DNA of 64,000 nt from Eutreptiella sp. 'Long Island Sound 2002' (taxonomy: Eukaryota > Protista > Euglenida), in assembly GCA_964036045.1 (NCBI GenBank), contig OZ038379.1:17174001-17238000 (forward strand). The letters are read 5' to 3'. The position numbers and the translations under genes were made by a program. Positions 18,400 through 46,115 of this stretch are shown piece after piece (positions within the stretch are counted from its first letter, which is position 1; every line of letters starts with the position of its first letter). The notes below the pieces were generated by a model. That model saw only the letters and a list, made by a program, of their open reading frames with translations. It ran no database searches and had not been told where the DNA came from.

Positions 18400-18523
18400 A
18401 TATTAGTATTAGTATTGGAACCACAAAAAGCTTGGTTTCAAAAAAAGCCCCAAAAATGTGGATATTAGTATTAGTATTGGAACCACAAAAAGCTTGGTTT
18501 CAAAAAAAGCCCCAAAAATGTGG
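18400..18523. repeat. Perfect 62-bp tandem duplication
   Basis: ATATTAGTATTAGTATTGGAACCACAAAAAGCTTGG...AAATGTGG at 18400 and 18462. Confidence 0.9.
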
Positions 18524-21500
18524 AAACGTGGGGTCGCCATGTTAGGACAAGCACATGTAAGAAAGAAAGGGGGGGGTGGGATGCCCACCACATATGCTGC
18601 TTCCCCACATTTGGCTGATATAAAGACATGTGTCACTCTGGTTGCTAATGTTGACTCACGGTTCGAGCCAAAGGGATGCAGTCCCCCTGATTTTCAGATC
18701 GGGGGTTTAGAAAAGCATTGAACAGAAGGATTGGAGACCATGGGCGTGTCTACATCGAGGTGTTCAGCCCAGCAGTCGCTGAAGCATTGCACAACATCGA
18801 CAATTCTCGAAGCAGCCGTGGTTATAGGAGTACTCGTCACCCTTTGTCACATCCAACCACCAGAAACGCCATCCAAAACACCGCAAACCGTTTTCATCGT
18901 CAATTCCTCACCGTCGGGAGTACGGTTGTAGCCCCCCTCCTCTGGCACCCCAGCTACTTCCCCTTCAGAGAGCAGAGCCCCAGCACGTCGGCTGTGTTGC
19001 ATCCACATTTCACTGCAGAATTGCTCCGTGGAACACATGATGCACTTGAAACAGGTTTGCACTCAGAGTCACTACCGCAGACCAGGACGGATCCATTGGG
19101 TGACAGGACACAGGGCAGGTGTGGCCCCACCTGCAGTCTGTCCCCACGCAAACGGGCCACCGAAGTGTCATCCTCACACCCCGTACCCCGTCCTCCCCTT
19201 GATTCGCATTAGTATCCAGGACCTTTACAGGCCAGTGCCCTCCTCCCCTTGAATAGCGCCCCACAATGTGTGACGGTGCCCCCCCCCCCCCCCCGCCCGG
19301 GGAGTGGTTGCCATCAAAGGCTAAGTAAGTCTGCCGGTGCCTACTTCAGCTGTACACACTGGTTTGGTTTTGAGAAATCAGTTGTGACACTGATTGTCCC
19401 AAGCCGTTGGAGGAAACGTATTTTTGGCTGGGGAGAGTGGGACAGTTGTCCCTTTGCTCACACGCGCTGCTTCTGCCCCTTGGCGTCCCGGGGCCAGGGA
19501 GGGTATGGAATTCCACAGGGCGCCAACATGAAGCAGAAAAGCCTGTCGCCATAACAACATGGAATGCCCTACTAACGCACCACTCCCCGACAGCACAGTT
19601 CAAGGGGCGCCGTGAATCCTTTTGAAACACCACCAGCATTCTGGTGTCCCTTGCGTTACCACCGATGGCGTCGAGTTCACTGGTCTCCAAGCAGGCTGCA
19701 TCTGCGTTCATCGGCACACAACGTTCGTCCGCCGCATGGACGGCTTCAGGGGGGCCCTTCTGATAGAAGACTATTCAAAGGGTAGTCCGAAATTTTGGCA
19801 GTTCTTTGCTGCACCAGTCCAGCCCCAGCCCTGATCCCGCCCCTTTTAGTCTTTCGTTTACCCTTTTTAGTCTTTCGTGTGATGACAGTACCAGGGCATA
19901 CCTGTAAATGCACCACCGCACGCCACCTCTGTAGAAGCATCAATGTGGACGTTACCAGCACGTGCTTCCGCCTCCTTGCGGTAAATGGCGCTGAACATGC
20001 TCTTGAGTAGACTCATCAGCACTGCTACCAACGTCGGTATCAGATTCAGACGCGCCGGCAGATAAGGAGGGCGTGAGGTGGGAGGTCTATTGAATCAGCG
20101 TGTCGGCGTGCCAAGGGAGCAGAGGGCACAGCATACGGGTCGTCCCAACATTGAACCCTCCGCAAGCTGTAATAGTTTCAGGCAGGCACAGCATGAAGGC
20201 ATGCATAATCTGTCTGTGAGTCGTCAGTGAATCTTCAGTGATTCGTCAGTGTCTTGCACTTGCTGTCTGTCTCTGTCTCTCTTTCTGTCTCTCTCTCTCT
20301 CTCCCTCCCTCTCTCTTTCTGCAAGACGATGTAGCCATGGTGCGTGGGCCGGGGGACGGGGTGCTGGTTCCTGGGGTTGCCAAGAGCCACCAAAATCCAA
20401 GCTGTGAAGGCAACAGGACTTCAACAAGTATTGGCCGGTAAAGACGCTTCAACCGGCGCAGGGCTCAGCCACAGGTCCCAAACACCGCCCGAAAGCCTAC
20501 CCCAAAATTGTGGGTTCTTGGCTGCGTTTTGATGGTTGGAGATCTGCTCAGTCGTGCGCTGGCACATCAGCGAGTGGTCCTCAGGCGCAGGACTCATGCT
20601 CCAAAGTTCACACTGACCCTGGGGACGGTCTCAAATGTCTTGTCACCTGGTGTCAATCGCCCCCCCACAACGTGGACAGTAGATGGACAGTCGACGATGA
20701 AGGCCGTGGGCGTGGGGAGCAGGCACGGTTGGAGTCTAATGAGGACATTGCAACCTGATCAGATCGATGCCCCCAACGCGGAGGCCTATCACCGCCAGGG
20801 GAGTGGACGCCATGGGGGGCATGAGGCTGCATACATGAACGGTGGTACGTCTCTCATCCCCCCCTCCGCCTTTTCCACGCTGGAGGGACTTTACCCTGTG
20901 AAAAGGCATTGTGTTTGACATCGCATGCACTGGCCCGTTGTGTTGTTGCCTGTGTCGCCTCCCGCCACACCGCCGTCCACCGGTGGTCTGTAGTATACAG
21001 CACAGGACGGGGGGGGGGGGGGGGCAGACTGAGTTTGGGCTGATCAGGGGATTTTTGGACAGATTAAGAGGGATGGGGACTGGACAAGCCGGGCTTCTGG
21101 GGAGAACGGGGTCGGGGGTGGGGGGTGAGGCTGCCCTGTTGTCTGTTGTGGTACACACACACATATATATCCAACAGGGCAATTTCAGCCGCGTCCACAT
21201 GTAGTACATGCGGTGGGGTATATACACCCACATCTCGTTCACGAAACGCGGGGGTGCGAACAGTGCCATCATTCAGCACGTGGGCTGGTGGTGGTGAGAG
21301 TTGCAGAAGACCAACGTACAATGATCACAGGCCTCAGAGCTGAGGACATAGCCTCAACAGTGTTTCTCGTTATGGGCAGCCACTGCGCTGTCGACCAAAT
21401 ACCCTCAGGTCGAGGTGGCGAAGGGCCATGTGGTTGGCACGCAGTCTTACGGTTCTGCATGAACGGAGGAAGGACAACCCACCTTCCATGCCACAATGGG

Positions 21501-23624: not shown

Positions 23625-23923
23625 TCACTTAGACTGCGGAGCCTTCAGCCCCGGGGGCTCCAGCCACGTCCCGAAGACCTTGTCCCAGATGACAAAGCAG
23701 TCGGCGTAGTTCCCACTGAAGGCATTGTGGTGGTGGTCGTGCATGGGGGCCCCGCCGTAAAATGGGATCAGGCGCCACACCCACAAATCATACCCTGAAT
23801 GGATCTCGATCGTGTACACGACGCGGAGGAAGGTCCACACGTACGCGGTGAACAGGTGGCACTGCATCAGGTACATGCCGGCGATGAGGGGCGTAACATC
23901 CACAAGAAGCAGCTCTGGTACAC
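23625..23923 (-). CDS. Sterol desaturase-like gene, exon 3 (last)
   Basis: Acceptor ATGCAG|GTGTA. Encodes IEIHSGY, MHDHHHNAFSGNYADCFVIWDKVFGT. Exons sum to 246+262+299=807 nt = 268 aa plus stop. Intron 2 is 14,579 bp. Confidence 0.9.
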
Positions 23924-24059
23924 CTGCATGTGGTGAACAGGCTCGCAGCCGTTCCTACTGCAATTAGCATTGCCATTCTCAGAGTCCTCGTCACGCCTGT
24001 GCTATTCCCTACCTATTCCAGCCCATGCCTACAGCCATCTCCACCAATCCTCAGCCTGA

Positions 24060-24410
24060 GCTGTGTTGTGTTGTGTTGTGTTGTGTTGTGTTGTGTTGTG
24101 TTGTGTTGTGTTGTGTTGTGCTGTGTTTTGTTGTGCTGTGCTGTGCTGTGTTGTGCTGTTCTATTCTGTGCTGTGCTGTGCTGCGGTGTGATGTGATGTG
24201 ATGTGCTGTGCTGTGCTGTGCTGTGCTGTTCTATTCTGTGCTGTGCTGTGCTGTGCTGTGCTGTGCTGTGCTGTGCTGTTCTATTCTGTGCTGTGCTGTG
24301 CTGTGCTGTGCTGTGCTGTGCTGTGCTGTGCTGTGCTGTGCTGTGCTGTGCTGTTCTATTCTGTGCTGTGCTGTGCTGTGATGTGATGTGATGTGATGTG
24401 ATGTGATGTG
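24060..24410. repeat. Compound pentanucleotide microsatellite (TGTGT)n(TGTGC)n(TGTGA)n
   Basis: Read directly; interspersed TCTAT variant. Confidence 0.97.
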
Positions 24411-24710
24411 CCGAAGGCGCTGTTACCGAAAGGCAAAGGCCGGGATGTCTACCCACGGGTACAGGTAAACGGGCTGGGCTGTGTGTGTTGTGTGCGCGCT
24501 GTGTGTAAGTGTGTTGTGGCATAGCCGGACCAGTGCACTCTCGCACTTGGCCGACACTGCCGTGCCGACGCCTGCGCGCAGTCACACAGGGTCTCATTTG
24601 CCCACTGCACCCTGCGTGCCGCGCTGCACCACCAGTGCCTTCTGTGTGGTGCACTCTGCTTGGTGCTCTGCACCACACTGCTCTGTGTGTGCCCTGCTGC
24701 ACTGTTGTCG

Positions 24711-27700
24711 TGGGCAGGGGGCAGTGGGCAGTGAAACTCCTGCAATGCACCGCCCCACTGCCTGGGGGCAGTGGGCAGTGCAACTCCTGCATTACACTGC
24801 CCCACTGCCTTGGGGCAGTGGGCAGTGGACCTCCTTCAATACACCGCCTCACTGCCTGGGGGCAGTGGGCAGTGGACCTCCTGCAATACACTGCCGCACT
24901 GCCTGGGGGCAGTGGGCAGTGGACCTCCTTCAATGCACTGCTCCACTGCCTGGGGGCAGTGGGCAGTGGACCTCCCGCAACACACTGCCTCACTGCCTGG
25001 GGGCAGTGGGCAGTGGACTACCTTCAATGCACTGCCCCACTGCCTGGGGGCAGTGGGCAGTGCAACTCCTGCAATACACGGCCGCATTGCCTGGGGGCAG
25101 TGGGCAGTGCAACTCCTGCAATGCATTGGCTCACTGCCCTCGGGCAGTAGGCAGTGGAACTCCTGCAATGCACTGCCTCACTGCCTGGGGGCAGTGGGTA
25201 GTGCAACTCCTGCAATGCACTACCTCACTGCCCTGGGGCAGCGGGCAGTGGAACTCCTGCAATGCACTGCCTCACTGCCTGGGGGCAGTGGGCAGTGGAC
25301 CTCCTGCAATGCACTGCCTCACTGTCTGGGGCAGTGGGCAGTGGAACTCCTGCAATAACCGGGCGCACCGGCCTGGGGGGGACGGGGAGTCCTGCCCAGG
25401 GGGTGGTCGGAACCTCCTGCAAGGCCCATGGGGAGCCATCATCTTCCAATAACCGGGCGCACCGGCCTGGGGGGGACGGGGAGTCCAGCCCAGGGGGTGT
25501 TCGGAGTCTCCTGCCAGGGCCAATGGGGGGCCATCTTCTGCAGAGAACCGGGCGCACCGGCCCGGGGGGGACGGGGAGTCCTGCCCAGGGGGTGTTCGGA
25601 GTCTCCTGCCAGGCCAATGGGGGGCCATCTTCTGCAGAGAACCGGGCGCACCGGCCCGGGGGGGACGGGGAGTCCTGCCCAGGGGGTGTTCGGAGTCTCC
25701 TGCAAGGCCAGTGGGGGGCCATCTTCTTCAGAGAACCGGGCGCACCGGCCCGGGGGGGACGGGGAGTCCTGCCCAGGGGGTGTTCGGATCCTCCTGCCAG
25801 GGCAATGGGGGGCCATCTTCTTCAGAGAACCGGGCGCACCGGCCTGGGGGGGACGGGGAGTCCTGCTCAGGGGGTGTTCGGAGTCTCCTGCAAGGCCAGT
25901 GGGGGGCCATCTTCTTTAGAGAACCGGGCGCACCGGCCCGGGGGGGACGGGGAGTCCTGCCCAGGGGGTGTTCGGAGTCTCCTGCAAGGGCAATGGGGGG
26001 CCATCTTCTTCAGAGAACCGGGCGCACCGGCCCGGGGGGGACGGGGAGTCCTGCCCAGGGGGTGTTCGGAGTCTCCTGCAAGGCCAGTGGGGGGCCATCT
26101 TCTTCAGTGGGCAGTGGAACTCCTGCAATGCACTGCCCCACTGCTTGGGGGCAGTGGACAGTGCAACTCCTGCAATGCACTGCCTCACTGTCCCAGAGCA
26201 GTGGGCAGTGGAACTCCTGCAATGCACTACCTCACTGCCCTGGGGCAGTGGGCAGTGGAACTCTCTCAATGCACTGCCTCACTGCCTGGGGGCAGCGGAC
26301 AGTGCAACCTCTGCAATGCACTGCCTCACTGCCCTGGGTCAGTGGGCAGTGCAACTCCTGCAATACACTGCCGCACTGCCTGGGGGCAGTGGGCAGTGCA
26401 ACTCCTGCAATGCAATGCCTCACTGCCTGGGGGCAGTGGGCAGTGCAACTCCAAACTCCTGCCACGCACTGCCTCACTGCCTGGGGGCAGTGGGCGGTGC
26501 AACTTCTACAATGCACGGCCTCACTGCCTGGGGGCAGTGGGCAGTGCAACTCTTGCAATGCACTGCCTCAGTGCCCTGGGGGCAGTGGGAAGTGGAAGTC
26601 CTGCAATGCACTGCCTCACTGCCTGGGGGCAGTGGGCAGTGCAACTCCTGCAATGCACTGCCTCACTGCCTGGGGGCAGTGGGCAGCGGAACTCCTGCAA
26701 TGCACCGCCTCAACGCCTGGGGGCAGTGGGCAGTGCAACTCCTGCAATGCACTGCCTCACTGCCCTGGGGGCAGTGGACAGCGGAACTCCTGCAATGCAG
26801 TGCCCCACTGCCTGGGGGCAGTGGGCAGTGCAACCCCTGCAATGCACCGCCTCACTGCCCTGGGGCAGTGGGCAGTGAAACTCCCGCAATGCACTACCTC
26901 ACTGCCTGGGGGCAGCGGGCAGTGGAACTCCTGCAATGCACTGCCCCACTGCCTGGGGGCAGCGGGCAGTGGAACTCCTGCAATGCACCGCCTCACTGCC
27001 TTGGGGGCAGTGGGCAGTGCAACTCCTGCAAAGCACTGCCTCACTGCCTGGGGGCAGTGGGCAGTGCAACTCCTGCAATACACTGCCGCACTGCTTGGGG
27101 GCAGTGGGCAGCGCAACTCCTGCAACGCACTGCCGCACTGGCTTGGGGGCAGTGGGCAGTGGACCTCCGGCAATACACTGCCGCACTGCCTGGGGGCAGT
27201 GAGCAGTGCAGCTCCTGCATTACTCTGCCCCACTGCCTGGGGGCAGTGGACAGTGCAACTCCTGCAACGCACTGCCTCACTGTCTGGGGGCAGTGGGCAG
27301 TGCAACTTCTGCAATACACTGCCGCACTGCCTGGGGGCAGTGGGCAGCGCAACTCCTGCAATGCACTGCCTCACTGCCCCGGGGCAGTGGGCAGCGGAAC
27401 TCCTGCAACGCACTGCCTCACTGCCTGGGAGCAGTGGGCAGTGCAACTCCTGCAATGCACTGCCTCACTGCCTGGGGGCAGTGGGCAGTGCAACTCCTGC
27501 AATGGGTGGTCGGAGTGTAGTGCCGGGCCTGTGGGGATGTACTACTGGGCGCACCGGCCTGGGGGGATGGGGAGTCCAACCCAGGGGGCGGTCGGGGCAT
27601 CCTTCAGGGCCTATGGGGGGCCATCATCTTCCAATACCCGGGCGCACCGGCCTGGGGGGGACGGGGAGTCCAGGCCAGGGGGTGGTCGGAGCCTCCTGCA

Positions 27701-30700
27701 GGGCCCATGGGGAGGCGTCATCTGCTAATAACCGGGCGCACCGGCCTGGGGGGGACGGGGAGCCCAGCCCAGGGGGTGGTCGGAACCTCCTGCAAGGCCC
27801 ATGGGGAGCCATCTTCTTCAGAGAACCGGGCGCACCGGCCTGGGGGGGACGGGGAGTCCTGCCCAGGGGGTGGTCGGAGCCTCCTGCCAGGGCCAATGGG
27901 GGGCCATCTTCTTCAGAGAACCGGGCGCACCGGCCCGGGGGGGACGGGGAGTCCTGCCCAGGGGGTGTTCGGAGTCTCCTGCCAGGCCAATGGGGGGCCA
28001 TCTTCTTCAGAGAACCGGGCGCACCGGCCCGGGGGGGACGGGGAGTCCTGCCCAGGGGGTGTTCGGAGTCTCCTGCCAGGCCAATGGGGGGCCATCTTCT
28101 TCAGAGAACCGGGCGCACCGGCTCGGGGGGGACGGGGAGTCCTGCCCAGGGGGTGTTCGGATCCTCCTGCCAGGGCAATGGGGGGCCATCTTCTTCAGAG
28201 AACCGGGCGCACCGGCCCGGGGGGGACGGGGAGTCCTGCCCAGGGGGTGTTCGGAGTCTCCTGCAAGGCCAATGGGGGGCCATCTTCTTCAGAGAACCGG
28301 GCGCACCGGCCCGGGGGGGACGGGGAGTCCTGCCCAGGGGGTGTTCGGAGTCTCCTGCCAGGCCAATGGGGGGCCATCTTCTTTAGAGAACCGGGCGCAC
28401 CGGCCCGGGGGGGACGGGGAGTCCTGCCCAGGGGGTGTTCGGAGTCTCCTGTAAGGCCAGTGGGGGGCCATCTTCTTCAGTGGGCAGTGGAACTCCTGCA
28501 ATGCACTGCCCCACTGCTTGGGGGCAGTGGACAGTGCAACTCCTGCAATGCGCTGCCCCACTGTCCCAGAGCAGTGGGCAGTGGAACTCCTGCAATGCAC
28601 TACCTCACTGGCCTGGGGCAGTGGGCAGTGCCACTCCTGCAATCCACTGCCTCACTGCCTGGGGGCAGCGGACAGTGCAACCTCCGCAATGCACTGCCTC
28701 ACTGCCTGGGGGCAGTGGGCAGTGCAACTCCTGCAATACACCGCCGCACTGCCTGGGGGCAGTGGGCAGTGCAACTCCTGCAATGCAATGCCTCACTGCC
28801 TGGGGGCAGTGGGCAGTGCAACTCCAAACTCCTGCCACGCACTGCCTCACTGCCTGGGGGCAGCGGGCGGTGCAACTTCTACAATGCACGGCCTCACTGC
28901 CTGGGGGCAGTGGGCAGTGCAACTCCTGCAATGCACTGCCTCAGTGCCCTGGGGGCAGTGGGCAGTGCAACTCCTGCAATGTACTGCCTCACTGCCCTGG
29001 GGGCAGTGGGCAGTGCAACTCCTGCAATGCACTGCCTCACTGCCTGGGGGCAGTGGGCAGTGGAACTCCTGCAATGCACCGCCTCATCGCCTGGGGGCAG
29101 TGGGCAGTGCAACTCCTGCAATGCACTGCCTCACTGCCCTGGGGGCAGTGGACAGCGGAACTCCTGCAATTCACCGCCTCACTGCCCTGGGGCAGTGGAC
29201 AGTGAAACTCCCGCAATGCACTACCTCACTGCCTGGGGGCAGCGGGCAGTGGAACTCCTGCAATGCACTGCCCCACTGCCTGGGGGCAGCGGGCAGCGGA
29301 ACTCCTGCAATGCACCGCCTCACTGCCCTGGGGGCAGTGGGCAGTGCAACTCCTGCAACGCACTGCCTCACTGCCTGGGGGCAGTGGGCAGTGCAACTCC
29401 TGCAATACACTGCCGCACTGCTTGGGGGCAGTGGGCAGCGCAACTCCTGCAACGCACTGCCGCACTGGCTTGGGGGCAGTGGGCAGTGGACCTCCGGCAA
29501 TACACTGCCGCACTGCCTGGGGGCAGTGAGCAGTGCAGCTCCTGCATTACTCTGCCCCACTGCCTGGGGGCAGTGGACAGTGCAACTCCTGCAACGCACT
29601 GCCTCACTGTCTGGGGGCAGTGGGCAGTGGAACTCCTGCAATGCACTGCCTCACTGCCTGGGGGCAGTGGGCAGCGCAACTCCTGCAATGCACTGCCTCA
29701 CTGCCCTGGGGCAGTGGGCAGCGGAACTCCTGCAATACACTGCCGCACTGCCTGGGAGCAGTGGGCAGTGCAACTCCTGCAATGCACTGCCTCACTGCCT
29801 GGGGGCAGTGGGCAGTGCAACTCCTGCAATGAATGGTCGGAGTGTAGTGCCGGGCCTGTGGGGATGTACTACTGGGCGCACCAGCCTGGGGGGATGGGGA
29901 GTCCAACCCAGGGGGCGGTCGGGGCATCCCTCAGGGCCTATGGGGGGCCATCATCTTCGGAGAACCGGCCGCACCTGCCTGGGGGGGACGGGAAGTCCAG
30001 GCCAGGGGGTGGTCGGAGCCTCCTGCAGGGCCCATGGGGAGGCGTCATCTGCTAATAACCGGGCGCACCGGCCTGGAGGGGACGGGGAGCCCAGCCCAGG
30101 GGGTGGTCGGAACCTCCTGCAAGGCCCATGGGGAGCCATCATCTTCCAATAACCGGGCGCACCGGCCTGGGGGGGACGGGGAGTCCAGCCCAGGGGGTGG
30201 TCGGAGCCTCCTCCCAGGCCAATGGGGGGCCATCTTCTTCAGAGAACCGGGCGCACCGGCCTGGGGGGGACGGGGAGTCCTGCCCAGGGGGTGTTCGGAG
30301 TCTCCTGCCAGGCCAATGGGGGGCCATCTTCTGCAGAGAACCGGGCGCACCGGCCCGGGGGGGACGGGGAGTCCTGCCCAGGGGGTGTTCGGATCCTCCT
30401 GCCAGGCCAATGGGGGGCCATCTTCTTCAGAGAACCGGGCGCACCGGCCCGGGGGGGACGGGGAGTCCTGCCCAGGGGGTGTTCGGATCCTCCTGCCAGG
30501 GCAATGGGGGGCCATCTTCTTCAGAGAACCGGGCGCACCGGCCTGGGGGGGACGGGGAGTCCTGCCCAGGGGGTGTTCGGAGTTTCCTGCAAGGCCAGTG
30601 GGGGGCCATCTTCTTCAGAGAACCGGGCGCACCGGCCCGGAGGGGACGGGGAGTCCTGCCCAGGGGGTGTTCGGAGTCTCCTGCCAGGGCCAATGGGGGG

Positions 30701-33700
30701 CCATCTTCTTCAGAGAACCGGGCGCACCGGCCCGGGGGGGACGGGGAGTCCTGCCCAGGGGGTGTTCGGAGTCTCCTGCCAGGCCAATGGGGGGCCATCT
30801 TCTTCAGAGAACCGGGCGCACCGGCCCGGGGGGGACGGGGAGTCCTGCCCAGGGGGTGTTCGGATCCTCCTGCCAGGGCAATGGGGGGCCATCTTCTTCA
30901 GAGAACCGGGCGCACCGGCCTGGGGGGGACGGGGGAGTCCTGCCCAGGGGGTGTTCGGAGTCTCCTGCAAGGCCAGTGGGGGGCCATCTTCTTCAGAGAA
31001 CCGGGCGCACCGGCCCGGGGGGGACGGGGAGTCCTGCCCAGGGGGTGTTCGGAGTCTCCTGCCAGGCCAATGGGGGGCCATCTTCTTTAGAGAACCGGGC
31101 GCACCGGCCCGGGGGGGACGGGGAGTCCTGCCCAGGGGGTGTTCGGAGTCTCCTGTAAGGCCAGTGGGGGGCCATCTTCTTCAGTGGGCAGTGGAACTCC
31201 TGCAATGCACTGCCCCACTGCTTGGGGGCAGTGGACAGTGCAACTCCTGCAATGCGCTGCCCCACTGTCCCAGAGCAGTGGGCAGTGGAACTCCTGCAAT
31301 GCACTACCTCACTGCCCTGGGGCAGTGGGCAGTGCCACTCCTGCAATCCACTGCCTCACTGCCTGGGGGCAGCGGACAGTGCAACCTCCGCAATGCACTG
31401 CCTCACTGCCTGGGGGCAGTGGGCAGTGCAACTCCTGCAATACACCGCCGCACTGCCTGGGGGCAGTGGGCAGTGCAACTCCTGCAATGCAATGCCTCAC
31501 TGCCTGGGGGCAGTGGGCAGTGCAACTCCAAACTCCTGCCACGCACTGCCTCACTGCCTGGGGGCAGCGGGCGGTGCAACTTCTACAATGCACGGCCTCA
31601 CTGCCTGGGGGCAGTGGGCAGTGCAACTCCTGCAATGCACTGCCTCAGTGCCCTGGGGGCAGTGGGCAGTGCAACTCCTGCAATGTACTGCCTCACTGCC
31701 CTGGGGGCAGTGGGCAGTGCAACTCCTGCAATGCACTGCCTCACTGCCTGGGGGCAGTGGGCAGTGGAACTCCTGCAATGCACCGCCTCATCGCCTGGGG
31801 GCAGTGGGCAGTGCAACTCCTGCAATGCACTGCCTCACTGCCCTGGGGGCAGTGGACAGCGGAACTCCTGCAATTCACCGCCTCACTGCCCTGGGGCAGT
31901 GGACAGTGAAACTCCCGCAATGCACTGCCTCACTGCCTGGGGGCAGCGGGCAGTGGAACTCCTGCAATGCACTGCCCCACTGCCTGGGGGCAGCGGGCAG
32001 CGGAACTCCTGCAATGCACCGCCTCATCGCCTGGGGGCAGTGGGCAGTGCAACTCCTGCAATGCACTGCCTCACTGCCCTGGGGGCAGTGGACAGCGGAA
32101 CTCCTGCAATGCACCGCCTCACTGCCCTGGGGCAGTGGGCAGTGCAACTCCTGCAATACACCGCCGCACTGCCTGGGGGCAGTGGGCAGTGCAACTCCTG
32201 CAATGCAATGCCTCACTGCCTGGGGGCAGTGGGCAGTGCAACTCCAAACTCCTGCCACGCACTGCCTCACTGCCTGGGGGCAGCGGGCGGTGCAACTTCT
32301 ACAATGCACGGCCTCACTGCCTGGGGGCAGTGGGCAGTGCAACTCCTGCAATGCACTGCCTCAGTGCCCTGGGGGCAGTGGGCAGTGCAACTCCTGCAAT
32401 GTACTGCCTCACTGCCCTGGGGGCAGTGGGCAGTGCAACTCCTGCAATGCACTGCCTCAGTGCCCTGGGGGCAGTGGGCAGTGCAACTCCTGCAATGTAC
32501 TGCCTCACTGCCCTGGGGGCAGTGGGCAGTGCAACTCCTGCAATGCACTGCCTCACTGCCTGGGGGCAGTGGGCAGTGGAACTCCTGCAATGCACCGCCT
32601 CATCGCCTGGGGGCAGTGGGCAGTGCAACTCCTGCAATGCACTGCCTCACTGCCCTGGGGGCAGTGGACAGCGGAACTCCTGCAATGCACCGCCTCACTG
32701 CCCTGGGGCAGTGGGCAGTGAAACTCCCGCAATGCACTACCTCACTGCCTGGGGGCAGCGGGCAGTGGAACTCCTGCAATGCACTGCCCCACTGCCTGGG
32801 GGCAGCGGGCAGCGGAACTCCTGCAATGCACCGCCTCACTGCCCTGGGGGCAGTGGGCAGTGCAACTCCTGCAACGCACTGCCTCACTGCCTGGGGGCAG
32901 TGGGCAGTGCAACTCCTGCAACACACTGCCGCACTGCTTGGGGGCAGTGGGCAGCGCAACTCCTGCAACGCACTGCCGCACTGGCTTGGGGGCAGTGGGC
33001 AGTGGACCTCCGGCAATACACTGCCGCACTGCCTGGGGGCAGTGAGCAGTGCAGCTCCTGCATTACTCTGCCCCACTGCCTGGGGGCAGTGGACAGTGCA
33101 ACTCCTGCAACGCACTGCCTCACTGTCTGGGGGCAGTGGGCAGTGGAACTCCTGCAATGCACTGCCTCACTGCCTGGGGGCAGTGGGCAGCGCAACTCCT
33201 GCAATGCACTGCCTCACTGCCCTGGGGCAGTGGGCAGCGGAACTCCTGCAACGCACTGCCTCACTGCCTGGGAGCAGTGGGCAGTGCAACTCCTGCAATA
33301 CACTGCCTCACTGCCTGGGGGCAGTGGGCAGTGCAACTCCTGCAATGAATGGTCGGAGTGTAGTGCCGGGCCTGTGGGGATGTACTACTGGGCGCACCAG
33401 CCTGGGGGGATGGGGAGTCCAACCCAGGGGGCGGTCGGGGCATCCCTCAGGGCCTATGGGGGGCCATCATCTTCGGAGAACCGGCCGCACCTGCCTGGGG
33501 GGGACGGGGAGTCCAGGCCAGGGGGTGGTCTGAGCCTCCTGCAGGGCCCATGGGGAGGCGTCATCTGCTAATAACCGGGCGCACCGGCCTGGAGGGGACG
33601 GGGAGCCCAGCCCAGGGGGTGGTCGGAACCTCCTGCAAGGCCCATGGGGAGCCATCATCTTCCAATAACCGGGCGCACCGGCCTGGGGGGGACGGGGAGT

Positions 33701-36318
33701 CCAGCCCAGGGGGTGGTCGGAGCCTCCTCCCAGGCCAATGGGGGGCCATCTTCTTCAGAGAACCGGGCGCACCGGCCTGGGGGGGACGGGGAGTCCTGCC
33801 CAGGGGGTGTTCGGAGTCTCCTGCCAGGCCAATGGGGGGCCATCTTCTGCAGAGAACCGGGCGCACCGGCCCGGGGGGGACGGGGAGTCCTGCCCAGGGG
33901 GTGTTCGGAGTCTCCTGCCAGGCCAAGGGGGGCCATCTTCTTCAGAGAACCGGGCGCACCGGCCCGGGGGGGACGGGGAGTCCTGCCCAGGGGGTGTTCG
34001 GATCCTCCTGCCAGGGCAATGGGGGGCCATCTTCTTCAGAGAACCGGGCGCACCGGCCTGGGGGGGACGGGGAGTCCTGCCCAGGGGGTGTTCGGAGTCT
34101 CCTGCAAGGCCAGTGGGGGGCCATCTTCTTCAGAGAACCGGGCGCACCGGCCTGGGGGGGGACGGGGAGTCCTGCCCAGGGGGTGTTCGGAGTCTCCTGC
34201 CAGGCCAATGGGGGGCCATCTTCTTCAGAGAACCGGGCGCACCGGCCCGGGGGGGACGGGGAGTCCTGCCCAGGGGGTGTTCGGAGTCTCCTGCAAGGCC
34301 AGTGGGGGGCCATCTTCTTCAGTGGGCAGTGGAACTCCTGCAATGCACTGCCCCACTGCTTGGGGGCAGTGGACAGTGCAACTCCTGCAATGCACTGCCT
34401 CACTGTCCCAGAGCAGTGGGCAGTGGAACTCCTGCAATGCACTACCTCACTGCCCTGGGGCAGTGGGCAGTGGAACTCTTGCAATGCACTGCCTCACTGC
34501 CTGGGGGCAGCGGACAGTGCAACCTCTGCAATGCACTGCCTCACTGCCCTGGGTCAGTGGGCAGTGCAACTTCTGCAATGCACCGCCTCACTGCCCTGGG
34601 GGCAGTGGGCAGTGCAACTCCTGCAATGCAATGCCTCACTGCCTGGGGGCAGTGGGCAGTGCAACTCCTGCAATACACTGGCGCACTGCTGGGGGGCAGT
34701 GGGCAGCGCAACTCCTGCAACGCACTGCCGCACTGGCTTGGGGGCAGTGGGCAGTGGACCTCCGGCAATACACTGCCGCACTGCCTGGGGGCAGTGAGCA
34801 GTGCAGCTCCTGCATTACTCTGCCCCACTGCCTGGGGGCAGTGGACAGTGCAACTCCTGCAACGCACTGCCTCACTGTCTGGGGGCAGTGGGCAGCGGAA
34901 CTCCTGCAATGCACTGCCTCACTGCCTGGGGGCAGTGGGCAGTGGAACTCCTGCAATGCATTGCCCCACTGCCCGGGGGTATTGGGCAGTGCAACTTCTG
35001 CAATACACTGCCGCACTGCCTGGGGGCAGTGGGCAGCGCAACTCCTGCAATGCACTGCCTCACTGCCCTGGGGCAGTGGGCAGTGCAACTCCTGCAATGG
35101 GTGGTCGGAGTGTAGTGCCGGGCCTGTGGGGATGTACTACTGGGCGCACCGGCCTGGGGGGATGGGGAGTCCAACCCAGGGGGTGGTCGGGGCATCCTTC
35201 AGGGCCTATGGGGGGCGCACCGGCCTGGGGGGGACGGGGAGTCCAGGCCAGGGGGTGGTCGGAGCCTCCTGCAAGGCCCATGGGGAGCCATCATCTTCCA
35301 ATAACCGGGCGCACCGGCCTGGGGGGGACGGGGAGTCCAGCCCGGGGGGTGGTCGGAGCCTCCTGCCAGGGCCAATGGGGGGCCATCTTCTTCAGAGAAC
35401 CGGGCGCACCGGCCCGGGGGGGGACGGGGAGTCCTGCCCAGGGGGTGTTCGGAGTCTCCTGCCAGGCCAAGGGGGGGCCATCTTCTTCAGAGAACCGGGC
35501 GCACCGGCCCGGGGGGGACGGGGAGTCCTGCCCAGGGGGTGTTCGGAGTCTCCTGCCAGGCCAATGGGGGGCCATCTTCTTCAGAGAACCGGGCGCACCG
35601 GCCCGGGGGGGACGGGGAGTCCTGCCCAGGGGGTGTTCGGAGTCTCCTGCCAGGCCAATGGGGGGCCATCTTCTTCAGAGAACCGGGCGCACCGGCCCGG
35701 GGGGGACGGGGAGTCCTGCCCAGGGGGTGTTCGGAGTCTCCTGCCAGGCCAATGGGGGGCCATCTTCTTCAGAGAACCGGGCGCACCGGCCTGGGGGGGA
35801 CGGGGAGTCCTGCCCAGGGGGTGTTCGGAGTCTCCTGCCAGGCCAATGGGGGGCCATCTTCGTCAGAGAACCGGGCGCACCGGCCCGGGGGGGACGGGGA
35901 GTCCTGCCCAGGGGGTGTTCGGAGTCTCCTGCAAGGCCCATGGGGAGCCATCATCTTCAGAGAACCGGGCGCACCGGCCTGGGGGGGACGGGGAGTCCTG
36001 CCCAGGGGGTGTTCGGAGTCTCCTGCCAGGCCAAAGGGGGGCCATCTTCTTCAGAGAACCGGGCGCACCGGCCTGGGGGGGGACGGGGAGTCCTGCCCAG
36101 GGGGTGTTCGGAGTCTCCTGCCAGGCCAAGGGGGGGCCATCTTCTTCAGAGAACCGGGCGCACCGGCCCGGGGGGGACAGGGAGTCCTGCCCAGGGGGTG
36201 TTCGGAGTCTCGTGCCAGGCCAGTGGGGGGCCATCTTCTTCAGAGAACCGGGCGCACCGGCCTGGGGGGGACGGGGAGCCCAGCCCAGGGGGTGTTCGGA
36301 GTCTCCTGCCAGGCCTGT
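24711..36318. repeat. Composite satellite: five blocks of ~47-bp unit A alternating with five blocks of ~94-bp unit B
   Basis: A = AACTCCTGCAATGCACTGCCTCACTGCCTGGGGGCAGTGGGCAGTGC. B = GAGAACCGGGCGCACCGGCCCGGGGGGGACGGGGAGTCCTGCCCAGGGGGTGTTCGGAGTCTCCTGC...GGGGGGCCATCTTCTTCA. A-to-B switches at 25357, 27504, 29831, 33347, 35099; B-to-A switches at 26108, 28481, 31185, 34323. Confidence 0.97.
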
Positions 36319-36364
36319 GGGTACTCCCTCCTACCTCTTAGCAGCAGCAGGCAAGTAAGCAGGC

Positions 36365-36650
36365 AGTACCGGGGGTCATAACCCCGGGGTAACAGTATCT
36401 GGGACTCAACGTGAGTCCTCTTAACCAGGAACAACCCCAAACACCGCCGGGGCTTAACTCCCGAACGTAACGGTGTTTGGGGCCCCCGTGGGCCTTATGA
36501 GCCCACGGAGTGTACTGAGGCGTGGCTACCAGCTGGACTGTGGCCTGCCATACCCATTTCTGGGCTCGCCTCAGTACGGCCGGCCGAGTCCGGCTCTGGG
36601 GGTTGCACACTAAACTGGCCCCGGGGGGGGGCCATTTACCCTGTTAAGCA
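36365..36650. ncRNA. Putative structured RNA/DNA module (multi-hairpin), identity unknown
   Basis: Perfect stems 36435-46/36471-82 (12 bp), 36486-93/36501-08 (8 bp), 36512-22/36567-77 (11 bp), 36402-08/36412-18 (7 bp), plus nested hairpins. Confidence 0.45.
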
Positions 36651-37525
36651 TTAGTTACGGCAGTAGGCACTATTCATTTCGTTAGGGAATTACTCAGCGC
36701 ATTTGTTTACCCCGCAGACATGCCCCTTCCAGTGGTGCGCTCACCTTTGGGGCTGCCTTTGGGGGATCGGGGGCTGTTACCCCTCCCGGACGCCCTCCCT
36801 GGTGTTGGCGCCGGGGTGGTGGCCGGGGGGCCTTATACCGTACCTAAAGGATGTTGGATACCGATACCGGGGTGTCCAACCGGACGGGGACAGGGACTGC
36901 GTCTCCGGGCACTGCCATCTGGCTTACAATCGACTGACCCATATTCATCGGCTGTTGGTATGGAAGCCTGCTCCACTCCAGTCCTCAACCACTCAGGCCA
37001 CTCCTCATACCCTCGCACATGTTGCAGGGCGGGGGGTCGTTGTTGGGGCCCCCCGCGCATGTCCGCGCCACCGGCCATCCTCTCCTCCCAGGCACCGCGC
37101 CTCTGCTAGGGCGGGGGCCCCTCACATGCACCCTCCAGGGCCCTTTCCACCTGCACACCTGGACGCTTGCCATGAAGACTCCGCATTGGAGCCTCCTCGT
37201 CGGCGCGCCCGGGCCCAGTTGTTCACGCGGCCGGCCGCCGATGCGGGGCCCTGGAGGCGCGCCGCACGGGCGCTGCCAGCCTGTGAGAGGGGCAAGGGCA
37301 GGAGATGGGGGTGGGGGGGGGGGGCAGTGGGCAGGGGAGGCGGCACGGAGTGGCTGCGGGAGGTAGTGCATGGGGGGCACCGAGAGCTGCATGGGGGTGT
37401 GTGGGATGGAGTTGGGGCAGAGGGCCCTGTGGGTGGGGCAAAGGCGCGGGGGGGGCGCATGTCCGGGCTCCTGCGTGGGCTGGTGCGTGGGCGGGCGCGT
37501 AGGGGAAGAGAGGAGGGGGAGGCTT

Positions 37526-37737
37526 GGTCAGCCGTCCTCTACGGAGGGTCGCTGACCGTTCCCAGGGCCAAGGCGGCCGGTACTAGGGGCCGCGGGGTCC
37601 CTGGGGATGGTGCTTGGCACTGGGACGTGCGCGCACCCGACACTGTTAGTACACCGCCCATTGGCAGTGCCCGGGCCCTGTCGTCGGGGGCTTCGCACCC
37701 GGCACCCAGCCCGTGAGTAGAGCTGGGGAGTACTCAG
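37526..37737 (+). ncRNA. Putative structured module with cUACGg hairpin and terminal H-type pseudoknot
   Basis: Hairpin 37526-37557 with two G-U pairs and a UNCG loop; hairpin 37561-37605; crossing stems 37705-10/37722-27 and 37714-19/37731-36. Confidence 0.45.
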
Positions 37738-38039
37738 GTGATGTGATGTGATGTGATGTGATGTGATGTGATGTGATGTGATGTGATGTGATGTGATGTG
37801 ATGTGATGTGATGTGATGTGATGTGATGTGATGTGATGTGATGTGGTGTGATGTGATGTGATGTGGTGTGATGTGATGTGGTGTGATGTGATGTGATGTG
37901 ATGTGATGTGATGTGATGTGATGTGATGTGATGTGATGTGATGTGATGTGATGTGATGTGATGTGATGTGATGTGATGTGATGTGATGTGATGTGATGTG
38001 ATGTGATGTGATGTGATGTGATGTGATGTGCTGTGCTGT
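37738..38039. repeat. (TGTGA)n microsatellite, about 58 units
   Basis: Read directly; a few TGTGG variants; ends in TGTGC units. Confidence 0.97.
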
Positions 38040-38502
38040 ACTCCGTTGTTCAGTGTTGTGTTGTGTTATGTTGTGATGTGGTGTGTTAGGGCAGCCCAGT
38101 GCGGCCTGGCACCGCTGACATCATTTCGCTTGCAAGGGCCATGTTCCCTCGTGGCACAGAACATAACAAAACACCACTTGACACAACACAACACAACACA
38201 ACACAACACAACACAAGGCAGCACAACCACACCACACCATAACTTTATGGCAATGCATCGCATCCCATCGCATGGCACGGATGGTTTATCTACCCCCAGG
38301 GCGGGGGCGAAATGGGGAATCTGGCCAATCCACCAGACCCACCCACCCATCCTCCCACATCAGAAAATGTTCTTCAGGGGATCTACTGACGGGGCTGCAA
38401 ACTTGAGGCGGATTTTAGGCAAACAAACTTTTTGGGGGGGCCTCCAGACTGGGGGGGCGGGGGGCTCACTGAGCAATTTCCTGCGCACAGCACACACCAC
38501 AC

Positions 38503-38764
38503 CTGCAAACTCACTGGCCCAACCAAAGGGGGCCTTGAATTCATGGTGTTGCTTATGGAATCGCCCATACAGTAACGGATGGTGGAAGGCCCGGTGCAGC
38601 CAGTAGAAGAGAAAGTCATTGATCACGGCCATGACGAGCACGTGCAGCGCCACCTCCCTTGCCGAGGGCAGCGTGCGGGAGATGCGACAGCCAACCAACT
38701 GTGCCAGGGGGCCCACGACGAAGAAAAAGTAGGGGATCAGGACAAACAGTTGCGCCAGCACAAC
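38503..38764 (-). CDS. Sterol desaturase-like gene, exon 2
   Basis: His boxes FYWLHRAFHHP and FHKQHHEFKAP. Acceptor CCAG|GTTG, donor GCAG|GTGTGG. Confidence 0.9.
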
Positions 38765-39844
38765 CTGGACAGAGTTTGGGAACATGGCCGCAGGATCACT
38801 TTGCCAGCGCAATCGGTGGCCTGTGAGCCCTGGTGAATAATACCGGCACAAAGTAAGTAAGGCCGTCGTCACCTAGCGGAGCGTGTGTGCGCAAGTGCGC
38901 CCTTTGTCTTGTGCTCGCTGGGCTGCACTTGCGGCGCAGCCCCGGCCCATCCTGAGCCTGCCTCCAGCCCCTGTGCCGCGGGGCAGCAGCCCAGGAGGAA
39001 CCCTTGCACTACGCACGCGACGTTCTGGGTACTGGTACTCTATCCCGATGAAGCCCCCCATTTGGTCCCTTCCATGCGTTCTCGTGCGGAGGTGGTTGGA
39101 CCACGAGTGAATGAAGCTCTCAGTGTTCCCTGTGCGCATGGCGGTGGTCTGCCAACCCCGGTGGCGGCGGGTTCCATGGGGTTACCATGTAGTACGAACG
39201 ACGTCCAGTGCCGTGTATTGATCGAGGTCATTTGTGAAGAGAAGGGGCGGGAAGGGGTGGGGGCCTTAAGAGGTCAGGTGTGGTCCCGCCACTGTGCTCC
39301 AGCTGCGCCTGCCTTCACACAGCCTTCATTGCCAATCAGTTCCAAAGGACAGTGCTCAGAGTTCTCCATCGATGGTGGAAATGCGCACCTCCCTCCTCCT
39401 TGGCTTGGGATAGAGAACTGCCTTGTTGTTTGCTGGAGGTCTCTCCTCTCTGTTTCTCCTCCCTCCTTTGGCGTTGGTTTGGGGGCGTGGCGCATATGCA
39501 TACATGGTGGGGGCGGTGAGGGGGAGGGGGGGGGGCAGAGGCAACGGCAGTTTTGTTGGTGAGAGATTGAATCATTCAATCATTCCCAGACTGTGAAGTT
39601 TGGAAGGCGCTCTCCACCACCGATGATGTGGGAAATGGTAATACAGGGTTAAGGGGTTGCGGATCACCAAGGGTCACTGGTGCCCTGCATTTCCGAGCCT
39701 TCTGCGCCATGGCATCCTGAGTGGGATGTGCTCGCTGTGCTGTGGGCCAGGTATTCCGGTTCTGAGCCCATAGCCCCTTGGGGGGGGGGGGGGGGGGAGG
39801 GATGAGGCTGGCATTGGGGGCTGGGGTTAATCCCTCAGCTCAAC

Positions 39845-42787: not shown

Positions 42788-43864
42788 TCACGTCCAGCCG
42801 ACGGCCCGCTGCAGCAACCAAACGGCGTGGCCCACAAGCGCCAGAGCAAACCTCCAATGCGAGAACTCGTACGTCTCCAGCGAAAGCCGCCCATTGGCCT
42901 CCAACCGCTCGGCCACCTCCGCAGCGGCCGGGAAGCCCACGGGGTCATACCGGAGGTCGATAAAAAGTCCAAAGTGGTCACTGGGAAAGACCTCTGGGGC
43001 CCCAGGCACAGCCTCTTGAGCCCAGAGCCGACACGGGCTGACCGGGGCGAAGCCGAAGTTCTTGGACACCAGAATCCGGTCAAGCCGCATCCGCCGGGAC
43101 TCCCCCGGAATGTACCGGGGGATCATCGCGTTCTTGGCAGCGTCAAATGTGTAGCCGGGGTCTTGGTCGCCTCCGGACTGGAAATGTGTCTCCGCCCAGC
43201 AGTCCAGCAGGCCGTGATCAGGGACCACGCCGTCCTCGCAGACGTAGTGCAGGTTGAGATCGCCCAGCAGCGCATAGGGCAGCGCGCGTGCGCGCAGGAA
43301 CGCGACTGCCGCCGCAATCTGCGTTTCGCGGATCCGCTTGTGCCGCGGCGTCTGGTACGCTTTGGTGTGCATTGCACACACCATGAAGCGGACCGCGAGG
43401 CTGTCCACCGAGGGCGCAACCTCGAAAGTGGCAACGACAGGACCCAACCGTGAGAAACCTCTACCTAGGTCTAGCACACAGCAGTGCGAGATCGGCAGTT
43501 GGCTGAGGATGACACAGCCATGCGGCTGCGCGCATCCCTCTGGGTTGGGCGGGAGCTCTGTGACGTGATACTTGGCTCGGACGAAGGCCGACTGCATGAG
43601 CAGCCCCAGGCAGTGGGGCGTCACTTCGTTGAGGGCAAGAATGGTGGCATTTAGCGCCTCGATCCTCTGAATCAGGGCCTCTGTGCGCCGCGCGCTCGCT
43701 ATGGCGAGCTCCACTGTCCACGGGAAGCAGTCCGCCAGAATGTTGAACGTCGCAAGGCGGAGGGGGTCAGGGAGCGCGACAGGCGGCGTTGCGGGAGCGG
43801 GGCTTTCGGCCCATTCTGTGCCGTCCCATTGCAGAACGCCATTGGGGCGGCCTTGGGCTGCCAT
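42788..43864 (-). CDS. Endonuclease/exonuclease/phosphatase (EEP) family protein, TDP2-like, intronless
   Basis: Motifs LATFNIL, ALNEVT, MHT, LLGDLN, GYTF, RLDRIL, PSDHFGL. ATG at 43864, 358 aa, hydrophobic C-terminal helix. Confidence 0.88.
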   Translation of the reverse strand: MAAQGRPNGVLQWDGTEWAESPAPATPPVALPDPLRLATFNILADCFPWTVELAIASARRTEALIQRIEALNATILALNEVTPHCLGLLMQSAFVRAKYHVTELPPNPEGCAQPHGCVILSQLPISHCCVLDLGRGFSRLGPVVATFEVAPSVDSLAVRFMVCAMHTKAYQTPRHKRIRETQIAAAVAFLRARALPYALLGDLNLHYVCEDGVVPDHGLLDCWAETHFQSGGDQDPGYTFDAAKNAMIPRYIPGESRRMRLDRILVSKNFGFAPVSPCRLWAQEAVPGAPEVFPSDHFGLFIDLRYDPVGFPAAAEVAERLEANGRLSLETYEFSHWRFALALVGHAVWLLQRAVGWT

Positions 43865-46115
43865 GTCACTGCGGGTGCGTCTGGGAGCACGTATCGATGA
43901 TGGGCCTGATGCCCAACACAACACAGCCTGAAAAAGGGGACAAGGAGAGGAATAGAGGGAGATAATGATGGGAGGGGACGTTGATGGGAGGAAATGCCTC
44001 GCCCTCCATGTTGACGGTTTGGTCCAGCAGTCCGCAATGGGCTGACGCCAAGGCTAGGGGTAGTAGCTCAATGACCAACCACCAAAGCCTACGACTCCCT
44101 TCCTCCCTCTGTCCCTTACGCACACATGTGGAAGCATGGCTCATCTGACCGCCGGATTTTAGACTCTGGTTTTGCAGCTTATCATCCGATCCATGTGTGT
44201 GTCACAAGTGAGCACGGCATTCCTAAGCATGGCACGTGCTTCCCTCAGGATGAGGGAGGATATCAATTGCCTCACTTACCACCCTGTGCAAGTGCTGTAG
44301 CTGCTTGAGAGGTTGACCATTGACCATTGAGCATGGCTGTTTCAGGAAGGGTAGCCCAAAAATGTATTCTCTCAAAAGCATGACCTCCTCATTTTAGTTC
44401 TTAATTCCATTTGTGTCTGTTGCCGCTTTAGCTGATGCATCCACCTTTTAGTTCACAATGCAAGCTTAGATCTGCGATTTTCGCCGCAACACTGAACGCT
44501 GCTGTTGTTACACTATGCACACACAGGCCGACTCTTTCCATGGGGTCAAAGGAACAGAAGCAAATCAAGAGGACAGGATTTCTGACCTTAATGTTGAGGT
44601 GATACTTTGATTGGGACCATCACCTCTAGTGACATTGGATCTACTGGCCCCTGATATGCAACTGGTGGCAGCGACATATGCACCACGGCTGTTGGCCTCA
44701 CCACGGAAAAAAAAACCACAACCTGGAATTTGATGGAACGCCAATTTTTCAGCCTATGAATTGCTGTGTATGCCCAAAGTGCAATCCGACTATCCCCCTT
44801 CATCCACAAAATGATAGGCCGGCAATCATGGTAAAGGCTCCATACCAATCAGAAATGTGATGGAGGAAGGGGGGCACTGTTCACCAGGGGTTTGCCATAA
44901 AGGTTAAAAAAGTAAGCTGATTGGTAGTTCCGGGTGTACAAACATGTTCGCTTTTGAGGAGGGAATTCTCCACTCGTGGATAGGTGGGTTAGTTGCCCAT
45001 CCGTTGGGTTGGGGATAAATACAGCGGGCTCAAAAAGCTGTGAGAGACGGGCAGCCTGCTGGGCTACCTGACATCCATGTAAAAGTCATTTTCACTGCGT
45101 GAGAGTGACAGTCATTGCGCATACAATCTCCCATGTAACCCCCATATAGTCCCCAAATAGTCTCCATGTAATCCTAAATACCCTGTGAGCCCCTCCGGTT
45201 ATACCTGCAGCAAAACAGGGCGGATAACCCGGTGCATCATGTTGGCCAACCCCAAAATAGGAGTGGGACTGTGGTCAAACCGGCCGTTTTGGCCGCCAGC
45301 CAGTCCAGGGTCCCTGAAATCCCGGGGGCTGGGGGAAGTTGAGAATGCCCACTCAACCAGAAACAAGCAGGGCGAGGGGGAGGGGGATTGCTTAGCTCCA
45401 TGGGTAGGTGTCATGATACAGCCCCGCCCACAACTGCGAGCACACCCCAATGTGCTAGGGATATTCCATTGGGACTAGCCCGTGCTTGCACACGGCACAA
45501 GTAGTGTGGTTGTGGACTTAGGGTGAATCCTTGCACTGCGCGCGCACTGCACGCTACTCTTAGACTATGTCCCCCCCGAAGAGCCCCTAGGCACGCCCCT
45601 TGGAGGTGGAGTGTGCTTCGGGAAGAAAAAGAAGCAAAACAAATGTTCGCGGGGAAGTATCTCATTGTGCCCATACTTGAGCCAAAACTCCTCGGCAGAG
45701 TACGCATCAATACCCATACAACTGATTTGTGTCCTTGATGACTAAGATCCGCGACAACGCTCATCCACCATTGAACACCATCTTTTTGGGGGTCAAGAGG
45801 GTGAGCTCCAATGCTTTTCTCATGTATATGGAGCAACATCTCAAGGATCTTGTCTTCCGTTTGTTTGTTCATTTTTGCCACCTCCTCCTCGGTGAATGTT
45901 CGAGGTTCATGCATCAAAACCTACTACCAAACAACAATCATGCCCACATTACCACAAAGTATGGGTTTCTACTTTCTACCTTTCTACTACGGCCAGGCGC
46001 TCAAATAGTTGCACCGCGCGCGCATTGCGCTCAAGGCACCTCCTTAGACCTTAGACTCCCCAAAGGAGCCCAAAGCAGAGTTTGGACTCTTCCAAAATCC
46101 CAGGGAGCAATCTGC

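Follow-up and report, generated by a model that had tools for sequence, protein, structure and literature searches.

A GC-rich, structured segment in a euglenid intron is very probably the antisense view of the 5′ UTR of a young LINE family that lands in TG/CA-rich microsatellites

What is the GC-rich segment (~64% GC) that occupies positions 36320-37737 of the Eutreptiella DNA analysed here (a stretch of 64,000 nucleotides, hereafter the window), on which strand should it be read, and what do the repeats on its two sides have to do with it? The segment, called B in the following, lies between a 94-bp satellite array, which ends at 36315, and a pentamer array of 60 (GTGAT)n units at 37738-38039, which is the position that a sequence-only reading of the window had given it. 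That reading saw in B a self-standing, non-coding mobile RNA element of the + strand, with a structured 3′ end closed by a pseudoknot and followed by a (TGTGA)n tail. Its remark that B holds no convincing open reading frame agrees with our results, since the longest frame (36703-37716, 337 aa) is open in merely 4 of 30 genomic copies and finds no match in Pfam, and the segment is thus non-coding. On the other side of the satellite, which extends over 24717-36315 (11.6 kb), lies a further module of 305 nt at 24412-24716, called A in the following.

The segment is by no means single-copy. Indeed, when the genome (2.28 Gb) was searched, each of the 40 scored matches spanned all 1418 nt with 96-100% identity, and a 25-mer from the outer end of B was found identical at 593 places. 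The copies are dispersed in hundreds, with exact ends, on all large contigs, and a mean pairwise divergence of 1.85% was obtained among 30 of them, the outermost ~110 nt being the best-conserved stretch of the segment. All 30 loci that were fetched carry the 94-bp satellite on the inner side, and none of the copies sampled stands free outside this element context. On the outer side, nearly all of the 30 junctions are TG-rich (L011 is without such a repeat and L017 adjoins a partial copy), with GGTGT, GCTGT, GTTGT or plain GT as the repeat variant in other copies, which upholds the proposed link between the family and TGTGN repeats. In addition, about 10 of the 30 copies are arranged head to tail in tandem arrays, as would be expected from new insertions into a repeat that already borders an older copy.

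The direction in which the element is read emerged from its coding relatives. At one locus (L031), the opposite strand bears a frame of 844 aa that stops 60 nt before the reverse complement of the first ~107 nt of A, which is directly followed by (ACACC)n. With the 844-aa protein as query, 5613 first-look candidates were obtained, and the 58 scored matches (97-100% identity) have open frames of 786-1797 aa with a common 3′ end, most full copies measuring 1794 aa; these lengths are a 5′-truncation series with a fixed 3′ end. Moreover, an 18-mer of A occurs at 2574 exact places in the genome, ~150 nt past the ends of this frame (ORF2). A full-length copy of ~11.7 kb (C1:190,327,505-190,339,168, comprising L076 and L043) shows on its sense strand, in this order, a 5′ UTR, the 94-bp satellite, a leader, ORF1, ORF2, the 3′ end and (ACACC)n. 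It starts, directly after a CA-rich repeat, with the reverse complement of B, CTGAGTACTCC; this 5′ UTR is followed by ~1 kb of the 94-bp satellite, a leader of ~190 nt, ORF1 of ~1200 aa (stop-free for 1230 aa), ORF2 of 1794 aa and a 3′ UTR of ~170 nt, in which 63 nt precede A 1-106 in reverse complement and which ends in ...CGCCTTCGGC. The arrangement is not confined to this copy: a 25-mer of the leader occurs at 99 places, at least 10 loci have it 2.3-2.9 kb from the outer end of B and in the right orientation, and the B copies linked to a LINE are 94-97% identical to the B of the window over its whole length.

Since ORF1 and ORF2 lie on the opposite strand in the full-length copies, the end that had been flagged as a structured 3′ end is the 5′ end of the element. 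The expectation that 5′-truncated copies would keep the segment fails as well, given 2574 3′ ends against 593 5′ ends. Comparison of copy ends confirms that copies share the same terminal base and that nearly all have a TG-rich flank, whereas the pentamer proves variable and the truncated copies lack the segment. Note that all these copy numbers are counts of short words and are approximate; on this basis, the genome holds approximately 100 full LINEs, several hundred ORF-less derivatives that bear B, and well over a thousand 5′-truncated copies without B.

It should be mentioned that our own first reading had taken the element to lie on the + strand, with A as its 5′ head and a large LINE beside L009 as its partner, and was rejected. 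That LINE had seemed to share A and a 47-bp satellite, but the word supposed to mark its end occurs once in the genome, and the sequence common to its copies (L046, L074 and L075) stops at a (TCC)n end. At L009, L045 and L046, the (TCC)n-ending LINE is nested, with a duplication of CTCAATAC, inside an old relative of the element.

Returning to the window, B does not stand by itself but is one module of a 13.3-kb minus-strand element at 24412-37737, which includes the satellite. All of its parts lie on the minus strand, where the 5′ terminus is at 37737. The first ~240 nt of the element RNA (37500-37737) start with the same CTGAGTACTCC and contain three hairpins, H1 to H3; they belong to the 5′ UTR (36320-37737, that is B in antisense view), which in full-length copies lies 5′ of the 94-bp satellite, ORF1 and ORF2, and whose inner part (36340-36665) is a multi-helix domain with compensated pairs in RNAalifold. 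Then follow the 94-bp satellite proper (35142-36315, delimited with TRF and 91-92% identical to the array in L076) and, in the place of ORF1 and ORF2, blocks of 47-bp and 94-bp satellite that form a VNTR (24717-35141, TRF), the 47-bp unit being missing from the full-length LINE. A unique stretch of 199 nt (24518-24716), of which a 25-mer occurs at 703 places, is specific to the ORF-less derivative and has no counterpart in the full-length LINE. The element closes with the 3′ end common with the LINE (24412-24517), which ends in ...GGTAACAGCGCCTTCGGC and is 94% identical to the last 106 nt of L076, which lie 63 nt past the ORF2 stop. No match to ORF1 or ORF2 was found within the window, so the earlier description of this copy as non-autonomous stands.

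The surroundings of the element are those of a gene. Two minus-strand exons of a fatty-acid hydroxylase flank it, one at 38360-38872 (Pfam PF04116, E 3.8e-13) and the other, which encodes the C-terminal part with the HDHHH box, at 23625-23903, and the insertion is therefore intronic, with the element in sense orientation relative to the gene. The hydroxylase locus is single-copy in the genome, and a search of the assembly with both flanks gave neither an empty site nor a haplotig. Thus, the satellite, the helix-rich module and the segment at 36320-37737 are parts of one 13.3-kb ORF-less LINE derivative in an intron.

The pentamer array, which had been read as a 3′ tail, is the upstream flank of a target microsatellite, and the same variant is found beyond the other end of the element. 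The 5′ flank (37738-38083, minus strand, TRF) consists of (GTGAT)n and then of degenerate TGTGN units, and the 3′ flank (24056-24411, minus strand) of (GATGT)n touching the element, with (GCTGT)n and (GTTGT)n farther out. In 7 of 7 complete elements (that of the window and six on C1), the flanking variant is the same at both ends, namely (GTGAT)n in the window element and in L073/L022, (GT)n in L068/L034, and (GGTGT)n in the four others. Since both flanks carry the same variant, which in one case is plain (GT)n, the repeat is a target and not a templated tail. In addition, the 3′ junction reads ...TGT/GCC on the + strand (junction at the slash) in 20 of 20 sampled ends, irrespective of whether the flank consists of a long array of pentamers, of (GT)n or of a short patch rich in TG. 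Our results therefore demonstrate that the family inserts into TG/CA-rich microsatellites, (CACAN)n or (CA)n, in one orientation. The pentamer arrays on either side of the window element are thus the halves of a split target microsatellite, and reverse transcription may be primed by pairing of the terminal ACA of the RNA with a nick after TGT.

The 3′ end that the LINE and its derivative have in common was also compared with other pairs of this kind, which have a conserved stem-loop beside a templated tail; it is not unusually structured (z of -1.2 on the minus strand and 0.1 on the + strand for 24412-24517 against shuffles). A search of the 3′ module against Rfam gave no match. A self-cleaving ribozyme at the A end, considered as another candidate, was discarded, with no match and no unusual folding. 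Taking anatomy, orientation and flanks together, we hold it very probable that the segment at 36320-37737 represents, in reverse complement, the 5′ UTR of a young and abundant euglenid LINE, that the window copy is an ORF-less one, and that the arrays beside it are its split target.

Is the parent element truly a LINE? Neither ORF1 nor ORF2 has a domain that Pfam recognises, even when E is relaxed to 10, and a search of 5.8 billion proteins returned same-species sequences only. The ESM features of ORF2 residues 540-1010 nevertheless fall in RVT_1 clusters (at 0.95 and 0.94), and an exhaustive HMMER search with ORF2 gave 505 relatives, mostly short fragments, among them P0118, which aligns with ORF2 603-788 at 43% identity (E 1e-31); for P0118 itself, Pfam RVT_1 scores 32.9 bits, above its cutoff of 29.6. 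Inspection of the ORF2 translation by eye suggests RT motifs A, B and C, an RNase-H-like stretch and a CCHC-like knuckle. With one intermediate homologue, language-model features and motifs seen by eye as the basis, ORF2 probably carries an RT domain. As for an endonuclease, Pfam has none in ORF2, a PDB profile search yielded nothing and the model from AF2 has a pLDDT of 43, the APE-like motifs in ORF2 being recognised by eye alone. The two ends of the element are unrelated to each other, and its 3′ end adjoins (ACACC)n or a variant of it. The LINE assignment is taken as sound because the RT evidence, the truncation series and the repeat-abutting 3′ end converge, and on these grounds (truncation series, fixed 3′ end and ORF2 RT homology) the membership in a non-LTR retroelement family suggested by the sequence-only reading was right.

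The same evidence bears on a spread at the DNA level, through segmental duplication, satellite-mediated recombination, or a rolling-circle or DNA transposon. Such processes would find support in the common head-to-tail arrays (about 10 of 30 copies), in at least one pair of segmental duplicates (L039 and L040) and in the large internal satellites of variable length. Tandem arrays are, however, also expected from landing in a repeat beside older copies, and the hundreds of dispersed, exact-ended copies on all large contigs, the graded 5′-truncation series with its fixed 3′ end and the RT homology of ORF2 speak against these processes, as does the fact that neither terminal inverted repeats nor a transposase was seen in the element. 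DNA-level spread is thus very improbable as the explanation of the family, and retrotransposition by a LINE remains our reading.

The structures that had drawn attention to the outer end of B are in part real. The hairpin at 37526-57 (H1) exists and has two helices, of 7 and 5 bp, with a 2x2 internal loop between them and UACG as terminal loop; the second one at 37561-605 (H2) exists too. Folded against shuffles, the 238 nt of the outer end give z of -1.0 on the + strand and -2.6 on the minus strand, and positions 36320-36660 give -3.2 and -5.7, respectively; the outer 238 nt thus fold no better than shuffles on the + strand and somewhat better on the minus strand, and the inner 340 nt have a clear structure on either strand. 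Diverged relatives provide a second view. In other non-autonomous families, the similarity to the main family is limited to the outermost 330-430 nt of the 5′ UTR; in one of them (L035/L042/L044), this part runs into a satellite of 12-bp period, with 77% identity for the module overall and with the outermost ~95 nt identical to the main family. An older relative (L067), in the same satellite context as the main family, shares 73% identity with it over the inner domain and 82% over the outer end. H1, H2 and H3 (37652-69) persist in three lineages (main family, L035/L042 and L067), their stems showing double changes and G-U intermediates and their loops varying freely; the UACG loop of H1 is not conserved among the lineages. 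The covariation test rests on the two diverged lineages, L035/L042 and L067, and its compensations thus stand for few independent events: in 36340-36665, RNAalifold predicts 102 pairs on the + strand, of which 10 are compensated on both sides (1-2 in slid controls, with 0 of 500 shuffles reaching the observed value), and 97 pairs on the minus strand, of which 11 are compensated, at -137.5 versus -131.3 kcal/mol on the + strand.

Compensatory changes thus support several hairpins (36340-36665 and H1 to H3), and the terminal pseudoknot is without such covariation support. Its complementary 6-mers are present, at 37705-10 with 37722-27 and at 37714-19 with 37731-36, and they are nearly invariant across the copies; the number of compensatory changes is zero. 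Among the few differences, an A-to-G change turns a pair into G-U in L017, L028 and L067, and one pair is broken by A-to-T in L009; L007/L008 and L067 have a weakened stem 1. In addition, when a 200-nt GC-rich stretch is shuffled, 4.7% of the shuffles contain an H-type pairing of 6+6 bp. Of the proposed CCCGAC/GTCGGG pairing, 2 of the 6 pairs are lost in the diverged relative L067.

The G-U pairs had been taken as a mark of the + strand; both strands have such pairs, which therefore allow no strand assignment, and a strand call from G-U pairs combined with alignment energies was ambiguous and was dropped. Indeed, as double compensations are strand-symmetric and G-U pairs occur on both strands, structure alone cannot name the folding strand, and it is the orientation of ORF1 and ORF2 that makes the minus strand the sense strand. 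A + strand retroelement or ncRNA without proteins of its own, with a 3′ pseudoknot and a templated (TGTGA)n tail read by an RT in the manner of CR1, L2, RTE or UnaL2, would explain why all copies stop at the same base beside a TGTGN repeat, and the conserved hairpins, together with some G-U pairs that suit the + strand, would fit it. Orientation, flanks and truncation are nevertheless all contrary to recognition of such an end by the RT: the full-length copies have ORF1 and ORF2 on the other strand, the flanking repeat is of the same variant on both sides and may be plain (GT)n, and the truncated copies retain the opposite end. Furthermore, the minus strand folds at least equally well and has G-U pairs of its own. 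The one copy that had looked like a 5′-truncated + strand element (L039) is a segmental duplicate of L040, as the interruptions of its flanking repeat are those of L040, 5 kb away. We thus regard the + strand model as extremely improbable.

The helices could also reflect the function of a structured host ncRNA whose gene was captured by the element. SINE heads often have their origin in host RNAs, and the strong covariation in a multi-helix domain of ~330 nt would be in keeping with such an origin. On the other side, Rfam 15 gave nothing beyond two chance-level matches on 36300-37745 with E up to 10, so that the segment itself matches no known RNA family at that threshold, all sampled copies lie in the same element context with none free-standing, and even L067, the older relative, is embedded in the same satellite surroundings. 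A captured host RNA is for these reasons very improbable, and we keep to the 5′ UTR of a LINE.

As a LINE that lands in microsatellites in one orientation, the family follows a habit known from some other LINEs, such as the microsatellite-specific APE-type elements Waldo, (ACAY)n, Mino, (AC)n, Kibi, (TC)n, Koshi, (TTC)n, and Dong, (TAA)n (PMC3812793). The insertion habit is similar in its fixed orientation inside a simple repeat, with one and the same repeat on either side, the 3′ end adjoining the repeat and copies truncated at the 5′ end. In contrast to that group, which has animal hosts, the present family lives in a euglenid, uses (CACAN)n pentamers as well as (CA)n as target, has a probable RT too diverged for Pfam, and possesses a structured 5′ UTR of 1.4 kb followed by a 94-bp satellite. 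The ORF-less derivative resembles SVA and other composite, VNTR-bearing non-autonomous elements, since it is non-coding, contains a large internal VNTR and exists in hundreds of young copies, and like SVA, which is mobilised by L1, it would rely on the proteins of a LINE. Unlike SVA, it is an internal-deletion derivative of its own LINE that retains the 5′ UTR and 3′ end of the latter; it is no chimaera of unrelated SINE and retroviral pieces and has no poly(A). With UnaL2/UnaSINE1 and the CR1, L2 and RTE pairs, it shares a last stretch of ~106 nt common to LINE and derivative beside a short-period repeat, but this common 3′ end is at 24412-24517, opposite the flagged segment, is without unusual folding, and the adjoining repeat follows the variant of the target. 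Altogether, this is a new LINE family with an ORF-less derivative, whose mechanism is of a known kind, and not a new kind of mobile RNA.

What might the conserved 5′ UTR do? Several LINEs, including human L1 and Drosophila I, jockey and F, have 5′ UTRs with internal promoters. As in these elements, the start base is the same in all full-length copies, and also in the ORF-less ones, the outermost ~110 nt are the most conserved, and non-autonomous derivatives retain the 5′ UTR, in whole even when both ORFs are gone. The common start base, the conserved ~110 nt and the retention of the UTR are consistent with a start-site determinant or internal promoter like those of other LINEs, and the 5′ UTR may be kept for such a determinant within the outermost ~110 nt, a promoter role that here remains putative. 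What the window copy retains of the LINE is only the 5′ UTR, the 94-bp satellite and the last 106 nt; these would be the portions necessary in cis, and the proteins of the LINE would copy it in trans. The folded domains of the 5′ UTR may in turn aid translation, stability or packaging. Here the parallel with L1, I, jockey and F ends, for the helices of the present family are conserved by compensatory changes, and to our knowledge compensated helices are no usual feature of those promoters.

A bolder version is that the helices of the 5′ UTR (36340-36665 and the first ~240 nt) form an RNA device acting in cis, and that the element represents a deeply diverged RT lineage, so far without a name, whose pentamer target is new; we put this forward tentatively and consider it rather unlikely. 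Messenger RNAs of this organism are normally trans-spliced, and such a device might allow translation of ORF1 independently of cap and spliced leader or, as another option, packaging by the ORF1 protein. If true, it would explain why the 5′ UTR has been kept near-unchanged in the ORF-less derivatives.

Our findings define a major repeat family of a 2.3-Gb euglenid genome, which automatic annotation would probably miss since both ORFs are blank in Pfam. In a published 2.37-Gb assembly of E. gracilis, unclassified repeats fill a third of the genome and LINEs are put at 1.5% (PMC11252322). The TGTGN/CA microsatellites of the present genome serve as landing sites rather than as tails. Moreover, the ORF-less derivatives amount to a natural deletion experiment: what they have kept, the 5′ UTR and the terminal 106 nt, is what the element seems to require in cis. 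The covarying helices of the 5′ UTR offer a concrete and testable RNA element.

Beside the 5′ end of the ORF-less LINE derivative studied here, TG-type pentamers (window 38040-38083) and CA-type pentamers (window 38156-38236) can form a long hairpin with each other, and an Rfam search of window 38040-38236 returned miRNA-like matches that were all below threshold. About 75-95 nt of unique sequence separate these opposed pentamers. Next to the hydroxylase exon, approximately 140 nt within window 38290-38460 have dozens of matches in the genome at 70-88% identity and are a short dispersed repeat. Elsewhere in the window, we found a perfect tandem repeat of seven 23-bp units (12892-13052) and a perfect 62-bp duplication (18400-18524).

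Three further open frames, all on the minus strand, were identified in the window. In the first (42788-43924, 378 aa), an Exo_endo_phos domain was recognised (E 6e-15). This frame showed no similarity to the element studied and is probably part of a further, unrelated LINE. The second (55884-57971, 695 aa) gave weak FAST-kinase-like matches, and the third (60290-62068, 592 aa) matched the DDE_1 transposase domain.

Outside the window, a second LINE, young and very abundant, was found at L045:710-3796, at L045:3610 to L046:200, and at loci L074 and L075. Its ORF1 of 1029 aa, for which there were 46,136 first-look candidates, had no match in Pfam; its ORF2 matched RVT_1 and Exo_endo_phos_2 weakly. 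This LINE ends in (TCC)n, and at L074:610-3000 a 14-bp satellite (CCTCAGTTGCACCC-like, >2.4 kb) lies directly past that end. At 9.29 Mb of contig C26, an old element related to the one studied hosts a nested copy of the second LINE, with a CTCAATAC duplication.

The 5′ UTR of the element studied also occurs in other settings. At 145.83 Mb of contig C1 (L039/L040), its outer ~790 nt are found together with the flanking repeat, with a second copy 5 kb away, an arrangement suggestive of segmental duplication and not of insertion; the duplicate adjoins sequence resembling tandem light-harvesting-protein units. In another non-autonomous family, seen at three loci on C1 (28.70, 173.05 and 196.27 Mb), 330-430 nt from the outer end of this 5′ UTR cap a 12-bp-period satellite (GATGGTGTGCTT-like) that runs for more than 1 kb. 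Finally, the 94-bp satellite and 5′ UTR together have an old, diverged relative at C1:45318600-45320660. It shares 73-82% identity with them, differs in its middle part and is of use in covariation tests.
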